From the sequence record MG655267.1: 64,000 bases of DNA; one strand, written 5' to 3'. Below, piece by piece: positions 6,255 to 11,911 of this stretch (its first letter is position 1; each line of letters opens with the position of its first letter). Made by a program: the position numbers and the translations under genes. Below the pieces are notes generated by a model. It did no database searches. It saw only the letters and a program-made list of their open reading frames with translations, and was not told the origin of the DNA.

Positions 6255-6836
6255 ATGTCAAAGAAACTCGATACCCGTAAAAGTATGTTTCTGGCCTTGG
6301 TGTTACGTCACCGTCCTGAAGAGATCGGAATTACCCTGGATGAGAACGGCTGGGTCAAAGTCAGCGAAGTGATCACTGGGTTCACCTTTACCGGGCGTGG
6401 GCTCTCATTACCTGAGCTTGAGATCATCGTTGAGACGGATGAGAAGAAGCGTTACCAGCTCTCTGACGACAAGTGCTATATCCGGGCCGTGCAGGGGCAT
6501 TCTCACGAGAGCGTGATGAACATGCAGCTGGAAGTGGCGACACCGCCAAAGTACTTGTATCACGGCACCCAACAGATCTCCTGTGAATCGATCGAGCGAC
6601 AAGGGATCTTGCGCCTTAAACGTTTATATGTCCACCTAACGGATGACATCGAAGCGGCTTGGCGCGCAGCAACTCGTAAACGAACAGCCGGTGCAGTCTA
6701 CCGAATCGACACCGAGAAGATGACGCGGATGGGCCATGTGTTCTATCGCGCTGAGAACGGGGTCTGGCTGGCGAAGCGCATTCCTTTCTCAGTCATTGAG
6801 ATGGTTGATGCACATGACGAAGAAACAAGTACCTGA
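6255..6836 (+). CDS. kptA: RNA 2'-phosphotransferase (Tpt1/KptA family)
   Basis: LRH..EIGITLDENGW, IRAVQGHS, YLYHGT, KRLYVHLT, NGVWL motifs. Confidence 0.92.
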   Translation: MSKKLDTRKSMFLALVLRHRPEEIGITLDENGWVKVSEVITGFTFTGRGLSLPELEIIVETDEKKRYQLSDDKCYIRAVQGHSHESVMNMQLEVATPPKYLYHGTQQISCESIERQGILRLKRLYVHLTDDIEAAWRAATRKRTAGAVYRIDTEKMTRMGHVFYRAENGVWLAKRIPFSVIEMVDAHDEETST

Positions 6837-8219: not shown

Positions 8220-8498
8220 ATGAGTAAAGGTACTTTAAAAGGCCTTGGTATGGTGCTGGCGTGTCTTGTGATTGGCGTATTGCTGTTTGTTTTTGCAACC
8301 GCTGTTCAAGCTGCCGATACACCCATTAATCCCCACTGCGTTGCCATCACCAATGACAGTACAATTACCACCCAGTGTGACGACGGTACCGTGGTCATTA
8401 CCAACACTGCAACCTCGACGGTGATGGTGTGTCATGTAAGTAAAGAAACAAAAGGTCTTCCGCAATGCGTGAAAGACCGGGTTGTCATTTCTAATTAA
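8220..8498 (+). CDS. Secreted/periplasmic small protein
   Basis: Signal peptide ending AVQA; four Cys in the mature part. Confidence 0.7.
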
Positions 8499-8521
8499 CG
8501 TTATTCTTCGGAGCTACACAC

Positions 8522-9655
8522 ATGCAGTACAGTACCTTTAATACCACTAAAAACGATCAGATGGCTGAACCGATGTTCCTGGGTCAGTCGGTTAACGTCT
8601 CACGTTATGATCAGCAGAAGTACCCCGCGTTCGAAAAGCTGATTGAGAAACAACTTTCATTCTTCTGGCGACCTGAAGAGGTGGATGTTTCGCAAGACCG
8701 TATCGACTTCCAGGGGCTGCCAGATCATGAAAAACACATCTTCGTTTCTAACCTGAAATACCAAACCCTGCTGGACTCGATTCAGGGTCGTAGCCCGAAC
8801 GTGGCATTGCTGCCGATCTGTTCTATCCCGGAACTCGAAACCTGGATTGAAACCTGGGCGTTCTCTGAAACGATCCACTCGCGCTCATACACCCACATCA
8901 TCCGTAATATCTTTACTGACCCCTCCATCGTGTTTGATGACATCGTGACCAACGAACACATCAAAGCGCGTGCTGAGTCCGTCACGGAGTATTACGACCA
9001 GCTGATCGAAATGACCATGTACCTCAACTTACTGGGTGAAGGCAGCCATGTAATCAATGGTAAGAAAGTCGTGGTCTCGATGCGTGCTATCAAACGCCTG
9101 GTCTACCTGTGCATCGTGTCAGTCAACGTGTTGGAAGCCATCCGCTTCTATGTCTCCTTTGCCTGCTCGTTTGCCTTTGCTGAACGTGAGCTGATGGAAG
9201 GCAACGCCAAGATCATTAAACTGATCGCCCGTGATGAAGCCCTGCATCTGACCGGCACTCAGCACATGATCATGTTGATGAAGTCCGGTGCTGACGATGC
9301 TGAGATGGCGGAAATCGTTAAAGAGTGTGAAGCAGAAACATACGCACTCTTTAAGGACGCTGCAGAGCAGGAGAAAGACTGGGCGAACTATCTGTTCCAG
9401 GACGGCTCGATGATCGGTCTGAACAAAGAGATCGTCTGCCAGTACATCGAATACATCACCAACATCCGTATTCGCGCCATCGGTTACGATGACATCTACA
9501 CCGGTGTCAAAGCTAACCCAATCCCATGGATCAACTCCTGGTTGGTTTCTGACAACGTGCAACAAGCCCCTCAAGAGTCAGAGATTACCTCGTATTTAGT
9601 AGGTCAGATCGACTCAACTGTCGATGCAGATGCGTTTGATAACTTCGAACTTTAA
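8522..9655 (+). CDS. nrdB: Ribonucleotide reductase class Ia beta subunit
   Basis: [19 protein letters not shown] (radical Tyr), [15 protein letters not shown] di-iron motifs; C-terminal SYLVGQID. Confidence 0.97.
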
Positions 9656-9712
9656 TACGTGATCAGCTTCACTCACGTAGAGGGCTGATCGCTAGCCCTT
9701 TATGGAGAGTGT

Positions 9713-10546
9713 ATGTCTGAGATAAAAGATAACCCGGATAACTGGAAAGTGATTCCGGGTTACTCACGTTATGAGATCAACGAAGTCGGCGTTGTAAGAA
9801 AGATACATAACAAGAAGGTGATGAAACAATGGCTGCGTGGTAATTATACCGCCACTGCTATCACTTCTGATAATAAGTCAACTAGTAGAATAGAATCTAT
9901 TCATATTTTACTGTGCCTTACATTTATTGGTCCAAAGCCCTTACCTGAACCTGGGCACAAACTTGTTACCGCTAACCACAAGGACGGTAACAAACTTAAC
10001 AATGTGAGGTCTAATGTAGAATGGTTATCCAATTCTGGTAATATTCTGCATGCTTACAAGAACCGGCTAAATAAATCATCACAGCACCTGCGTCTAACCA
10101 ATGTGGTCTCTGGTGAAGTTGTCGACCTGCATTCTTACCGCGAATTATCCAAATGGATGGGTAATCCTAACCTGCGCGGAAGAATGGAGTATCTGAAGTA
10201 TCGCAACAAGCTTTATCAAGGTCAGTGGCGAATAGAACTTCTTGGCGAATCAGAGAAGTCTTCAGGGTCTCGTACCAGTAAACAAGTATGCGTAATGGAT
10301 GTGGCTAAACGACTTGGATTGAGGGAGGGTGAGTTTGATACTTTTATCTTTAATTCCATGCATGACGCCGCTGCAGCATTAGGCGTAAGTCGCAAAGGTA
10401 TTGGTCGATCGATTAGTACCAAAGGACGTCATGTTGTAAATGGGTACGCTATATCGCTATCATTTGACGATATGGCTAATATCACTTATGACAAAGCGTA
10501 TGTGGAGATTAGTCTTAAATGGGCGAAACTCAGGGGTCAGAAGTAA
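9713..10546 (+). mobile_element. Free-standing HNH homing endonuclease (NUMOD4-HNH-NUMOD1-like)
   Basis: WKVIPGYSRYEI (NUMOD4), NHKDGNKLNN..SNVEW (HNH), FNSMHDAAAALGVSR (NUMOD1-like); visibly more AT-rich than its neighbours. Confidence 0.9.
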
Positions 10547-10614
10547 GCTCTTATCTGGTCGGTCAGATCGACTCTAAAGTGGACGCCAACGATTTCGACG
10601 ATTTCCAACTGTAA
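10528..10614 (+). pseudogene. nrdB: Stranded second copy of the nrdB 3' end
   Basis: Translates [28 protein letters not shown], versus [28 protein letters not shown] at the end of nrdB; no start codon. Confidence 0.85.
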
Positions 10615-10621
10615 CTGCTAG

Positions 10622-10645
10622 GCATCCATGCTTCGGCGTGGGTGC
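10622..10645 (+). terminator. UUCG hairpin after the stranded nrdB end
   Basis: GCATCCATGC-TTCG-GCGTGGGTGC. Confidence 0.55.
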
Positions 10646-10662
10646 TGTATAAAGGAGGATGT

Positions 10663-11259
10663 ATGGATGTAGGGCAACGCAATGTCCAGATCTCAGATCA
10701 GTATGAGATTATCGGCATGGCGGGTGTAAACTACCTGCCTTTAAAGAAGTCTTCCTCCGATACATACCGCGTGGTGTTGTGTCGGTTGGATGGGTTAGGG
10801 CGTGACAACACTAACTTGCATTATGACATCGATGATGCCTTCACTGACCACTACCGCTTTATCACCCAGCAACTCCCCTTTGCCGAATTTGATGGCAGGG
10901 ATCGTGTCACCACACTCATGCAGAACTGGCAAGGCAAAGCAACCACCGAGATCATTGACAACATCTTTAGTTCAATTGATCCCGACGCAGGTGCCTTTAC
11001 GCTAGAAAGCATCAGTGTGGAAAACGGTTACCTTTATGGCGAGGTCAGATTAGCCAATAGCATTGTGGGAACGAATCTCTCCATGATGCTGAACCATCCA
11101 CGTCCCGATCAGGCGGCCATGATCTTTGGTGTTCGCTACCTGTCGGTCAATACCCGGCTTGACGGACTGCAATATGCTGATGTCAAGAAGATCTGTGCGT
11201 ATGACGTGAATATCGTCAGCGAAACTGAATTAACCCAACGTCGTAACGGCGTGAAATAA
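10663..11259 (+). CDS. Hypothetical protein
   Basis: AAGGAGG SD, ATG at 10663. Confidence 0.75.
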   Translation: MDVGQRNVQISDQYEIIGMAGVNYLPLKKSSSDTYRVVLCRLDGLGRDNTNLHYDIDDAFTDHYRFITQQLPFAEFDGRDRVTTLMQNWQGKATTEIIDNIFSSIDPDAGAFTLESISVENGYLYGEVRLANSIVGTNLSMMLNHPRPDQAAMIFGVRYLSVNTRLDGLQYADVKKICAYDVNIVSETELTQRRNGVK

Positions 11260-11293
11260 TGAACCGTTTAAAAGGTGCTGTGAGAACCTATAA

Positions 11294-11911
11294 ATGAAAA
11301 GAACAAAAAATATAAAGCTTGATCGTTTTCGTAAGGCATGGAAATTTAAGAAGGTTACGCTGGCATTGATGGTGGTAACCGGATCGTTTTACCTGGTGGC
11401 GTGCGATGAGCCGCGTGATCAGCAAGTGCAGATGTATCAGAATGCGGATGACTGTAGTCGAGCTCGCCCGCAAGACAAGCAGCGCTGTTCTGATGCGTAC
11501 AATAACGCTCTGCGTGAATCTGAACGTACCGCCCCGCGTTACGGATCGAAAGGAGATTGTGATGCCGAGTTTGGCTCTGACAATTGCTACCAATCCACGG
11601 CTCATAGCCCGACCTGGATGCCGTATATGGGCGGATACATGTACGGGCGCAACGGGAGTTACGCACAGCCGTTGTATTCCTCACGGGTAACGTCAAGTCC
11701 TGCCTATCACCGCTACGTCGATGCTGGCGGACGTAACTACGGCAGTGCTATCTCTGGACGCTCGATTAATACCACACGCAGCGCGTTAGCGCCCAAGCCT
11801 GTAGTCACTTCAACCATTACCCGTGGCGGGTTCGGTGCAAGCGTGGCACACATGAGTAGTTCTCATTCTTCGTCCAGTCACAGCAGTGGCGGACATTCAT
11901 CTGGCGGTTAA
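11294..11911 (+). CDS. ygiB: YgiB/DUF1190 family lipoprotein
   Basis: MKRTK start, LVAC lipobox, YQNADDCS, AYNNAL.E.ERTAP.Y, WMP.M.GYM.GR, TITRGGFG.SVA match enterobacterial YgiB. Confidence 0.88.
   Translation: MKRTKNIKLDRFRKAWKFKKVTLALMVVTGSFYLVACDEPRDQQVQMYQNADDCSRARPQDKQRCSDAYNNALRESERTAPRYGSKGDCDAEFGSDNCYQSTAHSPTWMPYMGGYMYGRNGSYAQPLYSSRVTSSPAYHRYVDAGGRNYGSAISGRSINTTRSALAPKPVVTSTITRGGFGASVAHMSSSHSSSSHSSGGHSSGG

Follow-up and report, generated by a model that had tools for sequence, protein, structure and literature searches.

The end of nrdB, the gene for the beta subunit of class Ia ribonucleotide reductase, occurs twice in Erwinia phage vB_EamM_Bosolaphorus, a jumbo phage of the genus Agricanvirus (MG655267, 272 kb), and a gene for an HNH endonuclease lies between the two copies. 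We think it likely that this locus arose by intronless homing, in which an I-HmuI-like HNH gene entered nrdB, the tail of the donor nrdB was co-converted along with it and the native tail was left stranded downstream. The locus was analysed within a 64,000-nucleotide window of sequence record MG655267.1, whose positions 8400-11300 are 100% identical to that phage; coordinates of the locus are given in this window and equal the MG655267 coordinate minus 62000. In GenBank, nrdB is annotated as gp89, the HNH endonuclease gene as gp90 and the following gene as gp91, and the second nrdB tail is unannotated. The full arrangement is present in eight database records. Five isolates, colinear and with zero indels between them, and two metagenomic contigs have the same arrangement, a recurrence that excludes an assembly artefact.

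The two nrdB tails and the empty locus of Ea35-70

In the sister phage Ea35-70 this locus lacks an HNH gene, and the flanks match at 97.8% identity. In a site-by-site alignment the window matches Ea35-70 up to 9563, diverges from 9564 and regains homology at 10540; relative to Ea35-70, positions 9564-10539 are an insertion, in which a foreign nrdB tail is followed by a conserved hairpin spacer and then by the HNH gene. Directly downstream of the insertion, the native tail and its hairpin stand intact. The nrdB gene of Ea35-70 itself ends with the downstream type of tail, to which the second copy (hereafter the remnant) is identical at 72/75 nucleotides, and then continues into the same hairpin, which also directly follows the nrdB stop codon in the phages MadMel and AH06. 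Because an HNH-less nrdB ends in this way, tail and hairpin alike, the downstream copy is the ancestral end of nrdB and the upstream copy its replacement. An original prediction, made from the window without database searches, had expected just such an ending in relatives lacking the HNH gene.

The metagenomic locus L009 (Logan SRR28387224; L numbers denote the loci compared) is colinear with window positions 8523-10547 at ~80% identity, through nrdB, the same spacer and the HNH gene. Nine nucleotides after the HNH gene, a gp91 homologue begins, with no remnant and no hairpin. With its endonuclease gene free-standing and immediately behind nrdB, L009 has the gene order that a donor should show. 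Since L009 has the tail and the HNH gene and no downstream copy, the upstream tail is the working one and splicing is unneeded. The features of the window locus are as follows.

8522-9655, + strand: nrdB, class Ia ribonucleotide reductase beta subunit, a hybrid gene (open reading frame (ORF); Pfam Ribonuc_red_sm; E. coli R2 alignment)
8522-9563, + strand: native part of nrdB, Agricanvirus backbone (96% BLAST identity to Ea35-70 over the block covering this part)
9564-9655, + strand: foreign, in-use nrdB tail with the Y356-equivalent Tyr and the NrdA-binding end (departs from Ea35-70 at 9564)
9656-9712, + strand: intergenic spacer carried with the HNH gene (folding; conservation across cassette alleles)
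9713-10546, + strand: predicted HNH homing endonuclease gene, I-HmuI-like, with NUMOD4 and HNH_3 in its N-terminal part (PDB 1u3e, PHROG 59)
10540-10614, + strand: stranded ancestral nrdB tail, 24 codons and stop, truncated once at its 5' end (72/75 nucleotides to Ea35-70)
10519-10614, + strand: 31-codon ATG ORF enclosing the remnant (ORF list; called as a gene on Logan contigs)
10621-10646, + strand: native post-nrdB hairpin, 11-base-pair stem and UUCG loop (folding; same hairpin in relatives)
10663-11259, + strand: gp91, PHROG 11672, function not assigned; right backbone flank (97-98% to Ea35-70 and MadMel)

The 377-residue product of nrdB matches Pfam Ribonuc_red_sm (E=7e-53), and its alignment with E. 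coli R2 (7ai8) spans residues 1-377 (E=1e-200). Both marks of a class Ia NrdB are present, namely the full-length R2 fold and a C-terminal tail with the Y356-equivalent Tyr; the Tyr of SSYLVGQ aligns with Tyr357 of the 7ai8 chain, which is Y356 in mature numbering. In class Ia reductases, Y356 is a member of the radical-transfer path. For this phage family, mass spectrometry has detected the NrdB protein (PMC6690015).

Much of what had been predicted about the two tails was borne out. A tblastn search of the in-use tail against the downstream 2.5 kb recovers the second copy at E=1e-10, ending at 10614 behind the HNH gene and followed by the UUCG hairpin, and the two copies, compared over their final 25 codons with the stop codon counted, agree at 51/75 nucleotides and 18/25 positions. 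The contrast in codon bias is likewise visible, in a small sample, where third codon positions of the in-use tail (41.7% GC) and the HNH gene (40.1%) are poorer in GC than those of the remnant (58.3%) and the nrdB body (64.8%). The description of the in-use tail as a synonymous recoding, in contrast, fails: it differs from the native tail at 7/25 positions, and its last 75 nucleotides are identical at 65/75 to L009, at 58/75 to AH06 and at 49/75 to Ea35-70, which points to a natural foreign allele nearest to L009. The simplest reading is that this tail is donor flank brought in by co-conversion rather than a purpose-built part. A swap of the alpha/beta interface peptide had also been proposed; the change is literal yet conservative, and the positions altered in Bosolaphorus also vary among the working tails of relatives.

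The limits of the second copy needed correction as well. It had been placed at 10528-10614 and said to have no start. The end at 10614 holds, but homology proper begins at ~10540, overlapping the HNH stop codon; the residues TQGS that had been counted with it are the 3' end of the HNH gene read in another frame, since in L009 the HNH C-terminus is the same and no remnant of nrdB follows. There is, moreover, an in-frame ATG at 10519, which opens the 31-codon ORF over the remnant. This ORF has no evident ribosome-binding site and contains one in-frame stop in phage RAY, and it is probably not a gene.

The HNH endonuclease and its nrdB-linked relatives

The HNH ORF has its own ribosome-binding site and start and encodes 277 residues. 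The protein matches PHROG 59 'HNH endonuclease' (E=2.9e-32), and the sole solved structure matched by sequence is that of I-HmuI (PDB 1u3e, E=3.9e-5, residues 10-121). The I-HmuI alignment covers the HNH (beta-beta-alpha-metal) motif, with its catalytic His and its structural and metal-binding Asn residues, and N88, H89, G92, N93, K94, N101, E103, W104 and N110 are invariant in seven homologues. The ORF is intact in seven genomes, and its ratio of non-synonymous to synonymous substitution rates (dN/dS) versus L009 is 0.09, similar to the 0.07 of nrdB. At the same locus the gene is present in five isolates and L007 and absent from Ea35-70 and AH06; the gene thus shows, among close relatives, the presence/absence polymorphism at one locus with flanking co-conversion that is looked for in HNH homing endonucleases.

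Every close homologue of this HNH protein adjoins nrdB. A profile search of 1.84 billion representative proteins resolved the subfamily into four clusters only, below which scores drop from 257 to 153 bits, and the more distant proteins are not beside nrdB. Identities of the homologues to the HNH protein of the window, their position relative to nrdB and the presence of a remnant are listed below.

L007/L008: HNH 87% identical, 3' of nrdB, remnant present
L009: HNH 82%, 3' of nrdB, no remnant
L010: HNH 48%, 3' of nrdB, no remnant
L182: HNH 46%, 3' of nrdB, no remnant
L011-L013: HNH 44%, 3' of nrdB, no remnant
Klebsiella phage N1M2 and L183: HNH 47%, 3' of nrdB, remnant present as an in-frame fusion
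MadMel, Desertfox, Deimos-Minion and Rebecca: HNH 43%, 5' of nrdB, no remnant

By this comparison the same HNH family also appears as a free-standing gene after nrdB with no remnant, in L009, L010, L011 and L182. Behind the HNH gene in L009, L010 and L011, relaxed searches brought up no decayed remnant. The matches from profile-guided locus searches of IMG/VR and metagenome contigs were all distant HNH genes with the N-terminal domain in common, and an nrdB-like tail motif was absent from every one.

In MadMel (L002, MG655269, 1100-3045) the HNH paralogue sits upstream of nrdB, in the 23-nucleotide gap after gp89, and the same holds for Desertfox, Deimos-Minion and Rebecca (L187-L190). The paper describing the genus had noted a 'reversed order' of the HNH and reductase genes in Deimos-Minion, Desertfox and MadMel (PMC6690015); in fact, the two arrangements involve distinct endonuclease genes, one on either side of nrdB. 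Elsewhere nrdB is found in pieces. Serratia phage Sureiya (L015, 22-2116) has two nrdB coding sequences with a winged-helix gene between them, and in L182 (2-1548) a different HNH_3 gene lies between nrdB fragments. Rfam scans of L182, L015, L004 (N1M2) and L183 at gathering scores gave no match. With nrdB of Sureiya and L182 in pieces and no intron matched in Rfam, nrdB emerges as a recurrent target of mobile endonucleases.

Junctions, conversion tracts and the proposed mechanism

Three junctions coincide at one position of nrdB. The Agricanvirus remnant begins at the Val codon of E/VSSY (the slash marks the junction). In N1M2 and L183 the remnant begins at the same Val codon, joined ~30 codons inside the HNH gene. 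In the MadMel-type phages the foreign tract consists of the upstream HNH gene and almost the whole of nrdB and ends just past the EITS codons (EITS/Y), with nrdB identity to Ea35-70 of 55-88% before this point and 98-100% from the Tyr codon on. Mainly because these three independent junctions converge there, we infer a break site within a few bases of E/VSSY, three codons before the Y356 equivalent. The native tail peptide around this presumed target is the same in E. coli R2, and phage and E. coli NrdB differ little overall; host nrdB genes may carry a very similar target site.

The tail duplication of N1M2 and L183 is a second, independent event. In N1M2 the HNH ORF (L004, 2498-3295) is missing its last ~30 codons and continues instead, with the frame kept, as a second nrdB tail. 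The same fusion junction is present in L183 (3001-3786), whose HNH body matches the N1M2 one at 71% identity; both predicted proteins end with a 24-residue remnant of the nrdB tail and so carry the NrdA-binding peptide. NrdB of N1M2 and NrdB of Serratia phage Yubaba, which has no HNH gene, share 92% identity, and the downstream tail of N1M2, its hairpin and the next spacer align with the native end of Yubaba; because tail, hairpin and flank all match, the downstream copy is ancestral in N1M2 too. Between N1M2 and L183 the remnant shows nine synonymous and nine non-synonymous differences (dN/dS ~0.2, P=0.013 against neutrality), and in Agricanvirus, at only ~three variable sites, all differences are synonymous.

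The left edge of the donor-type sequence is staggered among cassette-bearing genomes. Bosolaphorus, Mortimer and RAY share the longest tract, and in Special G, Simmy50 and L007 the tract starts progressively nearer the junction, in L007 at the junction itself. Tracts nested in this way, with one end fixed, are typical of break-initiated co-conversion. In L007 the backbone is 97% identical and the cassette allele is a mosaic: identity falls to 74% in the tail, the HNH gene is divergent in its 5' half, and its last 300 nucleotides are identical, as is the junction. The HNH-less AH06 (L003, 4170-4300) has a chimeric nrdB tail, in which a 40-nucleotide exact run with the L007 cassette tail is followed by a 21-nucleotide exact run with the native end and by the native hairpin. 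AH06 could possibly be a cured allele, since loss of the insert via recombination between the two tail copies would produce this very pattern; we regard it as a lead rather than proof.

In the mechanism we propose, the enzyme would break an HNH-less nrdB a few bases from E/VSSY, and the broken left end would invade a diverged, L009-like donor with the HNH gene directly after nrdB. Donor tail, spacer and HNH gene would then be copied onto the left end, and the new strand would be joined to the right broken end via 4-8 nucleotides of microhomology at the HNH stop (..AAGTAAG..); the product, native nrdB and, in part, L009 share ..AAGTAAG.. / ..TAAG.. at the right junction. Such one-sided, illegitimate repair would have left the recipient's tail stranded, just as observed. 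A documented precedent is T4 intron homing where exon homology is limited, in which one side invades by homology and the other is joined at microhomologies (PMC2988022, section 5). In later moves, ordinary homologous repair would use the nrdB body as its left arm and the remnant together with downstream DNA as its right arm, and the remnant would be renewed from a working native tail at each homing event, which would explain both the nested left tracts and the mostly synonymous variation of the remnant. NrdB would work with its foreign tail and no splicing, and the mismatch around the junction, where native and in-use alleles differ at 14/33 nucleotides, would protect the restored gene from recutting.

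Several observations weigh against this account or loosen parts of it. The cut site is placed from recombination junctions only, and the length of the microhomology can be given only as 4-8 nucleotides because L009, the donor-like sequence, is only ~80% identical. The remnant-free state of L009 may be the older one, or it may derive from a remnant-bearing state by loss of the remnant and hairpin. Both Pfam domains of the HNH protein score below gathering (NUMOD4 18.7 bits, cut-off 23.4; HNH_3 17.4, cut-off 24.8). Its AlphaFold model, built on a six-sequence alignment, is poor (predicted local distance difference test score 62.7, catalytic domain <50) and was not used; a Foldseek search with it gave a weak match to I-HmuI (E=0.025). 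In L011, nrdB encodes the sensitive-looking VEVSSY beside a 44%-identical HNH gene, and peptide-level immunity rules are therefore not simple. The synonymous excess in the remnant could also mean a translated, useful product.

That last possibility belongs to a rival explanation, in which the downstream tail is translated and kept, as a 31-residue peptide or as the HNH C-terminus in N1M2 and L183, and could bind NrdA. The fusion stays in frame in N1M2 and L183 though the HNH bodies are only 71% identical, and the substitution patterns given above for the N1M2/L183 and Agricanvirus remnants point the same way. The Agricanvirus pattern, however, comes from ~three variable sites, the stop in RAY and the lack of a clear ribosome-binding site speak against the 31-codon ORF, and L009, L010, L011 and L182 manage without any remnant. 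Renewal from native tails at homing would give the same pattern without function, and the Ser codon switch AGT/TCT in the remnant is also found among native tails. We consider a translated remnant quite improbable; if it were true, the remnant would be a selected part of the element, and its product could dock on the reductase large subunit and either tether the endonuclease to the machinery of nucleotide synthesis or compete with NrdB. Somewhat more weight, though still on the unlikely side, falls on a frozen accident, in which the HNH protein is no longer, or never was, a working homing endonuclease here, the arrangement had a single origin, and the patchy distribution and mosaic edges stem from ordinary recombination during co-infection. 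Agricanvirus phages are 97-98% identical and clearly recombine, as the L007 mosaic illustrates; MadMel and Special G, though assigned to a single species, have different arrangements here; and homing by this particular HNH protein is putative. Against an accident stand the strong purifying selection (dN/dS 0.09), the ORF intact in 7/7 genomes and the conserved catalytic motif, together with the coincidence of three independent junctions at one nrdB position and the nesting of left tracts with a common right anchor, unlike random crossovers.

Two further origins of the paired tails were rejected. Two direct-orientation copies ~0.9 kb apart could suggest that the phage duplicated its nrdB tail locally in tandem, with later divergence of the upstream copy and an unrelated insertion of an HNH gene between the two. 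The identity pattern makes this very improbable, as the upstream copy matches L009 at 65/75 nucleotides versus 51/75 for its own neighbour in a locus otherwise 96-98% identical to Ea35-70, and tail, spacer and HNH gene form one colinear block in L009. HNH genes often reside inside group I introns, and T4 nrdB has such an intron (PMC2790892), which would suit an intron between the copies, or an HNH intein, with a mature product that uses the downstream tail. This explanation is scarcely credible here: nrdB is closed by an in-frame stop codon (9653-9655), the HNH gene has its own ribosome-binding site and start in a frame other than that of the remnant, L009 lacks a downstream exon-like copy, and an Rfam scan of 8300-11300 at E<=1 found no group I intron or other family. 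With no ribozyme core and no in-frame protein-splicing domain, the locus is intron-less, as originally predicted, and intronless homing with co-conversion of the donor tail continues to be the explanation that we favour.

Spacer, flanking genes and relation to known systems

The spacer at 9656-9712 is identical in the five isolates and 93-96% identical versus L009 and L007, whose coding flanks are 74-86% identical. An exact spacer search in IMG/VR returned phage RAY as the only match. Two predicted hairpins at 9656-9699 do form locally (9656-9679 and 9680-9700) when 9653-9700 is folded alone (-17.8 kcal/mol, z -3.6), but the best fold changes once the start region is included (-28 kcal/mol, z -3.5). 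The alternative fold has a 12-base-pair stem at 9676-9704 with outer helices and pairs both GGAGAG (9704-9709), in the ribosome-binding site, and the AUG (9713-9715). A strong hairpin likewise lies between the nrdB stop and the HNH start in N1M2, L183, L010 and L011; the L182 spacer folds no better than shuffles (z -0.7). RNAalifold found no compensatory changes among the three spacer alleles, and because of this the case for a regulatory fold is one of energy and conservation alone. The hairpin spacer probably limits HNH expression, by analogy with endonuclease genes of T4 and Aeh1; RNA structure controls the expression of I-TevI, SegB and Aeh1 mobE (PMC2988022). The spacer also contains an inverted repeat, GATCAGC...GCTGATC, which could be a protein-binding site, instead of or besides an RNA structure.

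In the right flank, the longest ORF of gp91 begins at a GTG at 10642, within the tail of the native hairpin, and the annotated ATG at 10663, behind an AAGGAGG ribosome-binding site, is the likelier start. A Tpt1/KptA-family RNA 2'-phosphotransferase gene lies at 6255-6836, a few genes upstream of nrdB (PF01885, E=1.7e-39), and is kept in AH06 and the MadMel-type phages. A scan for promoter and terminator consensus sequences gave nothing above shuffled expectation, jumbo-phage promoters lying outside its consensus.

The closest parallel in organization, already drawn in the original prediction and apt, is with endonuclease ORFs in fungal mitochondria that carry C-terminal duplications of their target genes, in Allomyces macrogynus atp6 and in Glomus atp6, atp9, cox2 and nad3 (PMC3630166). 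Both systems have, without an intron, a gene body, an in-phase foreign C-terminus, an endonuclease ORF and the native C-terminus downstream, and in both the native copy is far closer to the sister taxon than is the inserted copy (here 72/75 versus 49/75, Ea35-70). The fungal ORFs are of the LAGLIDADG or GIY-YIG type and organellar, whereas the present gene encodes an I-HmuI-like HNH enzyme, belongs to a bacteriophage and is preceded by a hairpin spacer and a ribosome-binding site of its own. The resemblance is thus one of analogy and not homology, with the same working and no membership by descent.

Among phage systems, MobE of T4 is a free-standing HNH homing endonuclease encoded next to nrdB that nicks T2 nrdB (PMC2790892), and the present gene is likewise a free-standing HNH gene adjoining nrdB. 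MobE acts on nrdB of phages without mobE and co-converts flanking nrdB sequence, relies on upstream transcription and has its expression limited by RNA structure (PMC2790892). In T4, however, mobE lies between nrdA and nrdB and the enzyme nicks the 5' region of nrdB, whereas here the site would lie in the last 25 codons and the target fragment is duplicated. MobE was never a named match in our searches, and homology is shown no further than the HNH superfamily. Endonuclease genes inserted in coding regions are known from Aeh1, with mobE in nrdA, and T4, with mobA in a topoisomerase gene (PMC2988022). These, too, are free-standing endonuclease genes inside an essential gene that stays functional with no intron or intein, but they split the gene into two reassembling polypeptides, whereas in Bosolaphorus nrdB is whole, having been supplied with a replacement end, and its former end is discarded. 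The N-terminal strands and the HNH motif, in which Asn replaces the last His, are common to the HNH protein and I-HmuI of Bacillus phage SPO1; I-HmuI is a 174-residue enzyme encoded by an intron in a DNA polymerase gene, whereas the present protein is free-standing, has 277 residues and carries extra C-terminal modules.

In ICP1 and other phages, islands of homing endonuclease genes have been found at exchange boundaries next to essential genes, and fragments of essential 'cargo' genes beside phage endonuclease genes have been proposed as recombination substrates (Barth, Dunham and Seed; PMC10055350). Compared with that general description, donor-like and recipient states, both junctions and a second event can be read here to the base. 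The mode of invasion is therefore already known, from fungal mitochondrial ORFs, T4 MobE and phage endonuclease islands, and the present locus adds unusually informative comparative detail, a target prediction and the odd fusion of an HNH protein with an nrdB tail.

For annotation, nrdB of these phages should be treated as a hybrid gene, and 10540-10614 holds a gene fragment absent from the record. The three junctions predict the target of the enzyme, at the codons just before the radical-transfer Tyr of NrdB. Within one phage genus the locus occurs in four states, empty (Ea35-70), occupied (five isolates and L007), possibly cured (AH06) and with a paralogue on the other side of nrdB (the MadMel type), and together with the donor-like L009 these form a compact natural series for the cycle of gain and loss of such elements. 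If our reading is right, the route by which a free-standing homing endonuclease gene enters an essential phage coding sequence, with neither intron nor intein, can be followed at this locus to the base.

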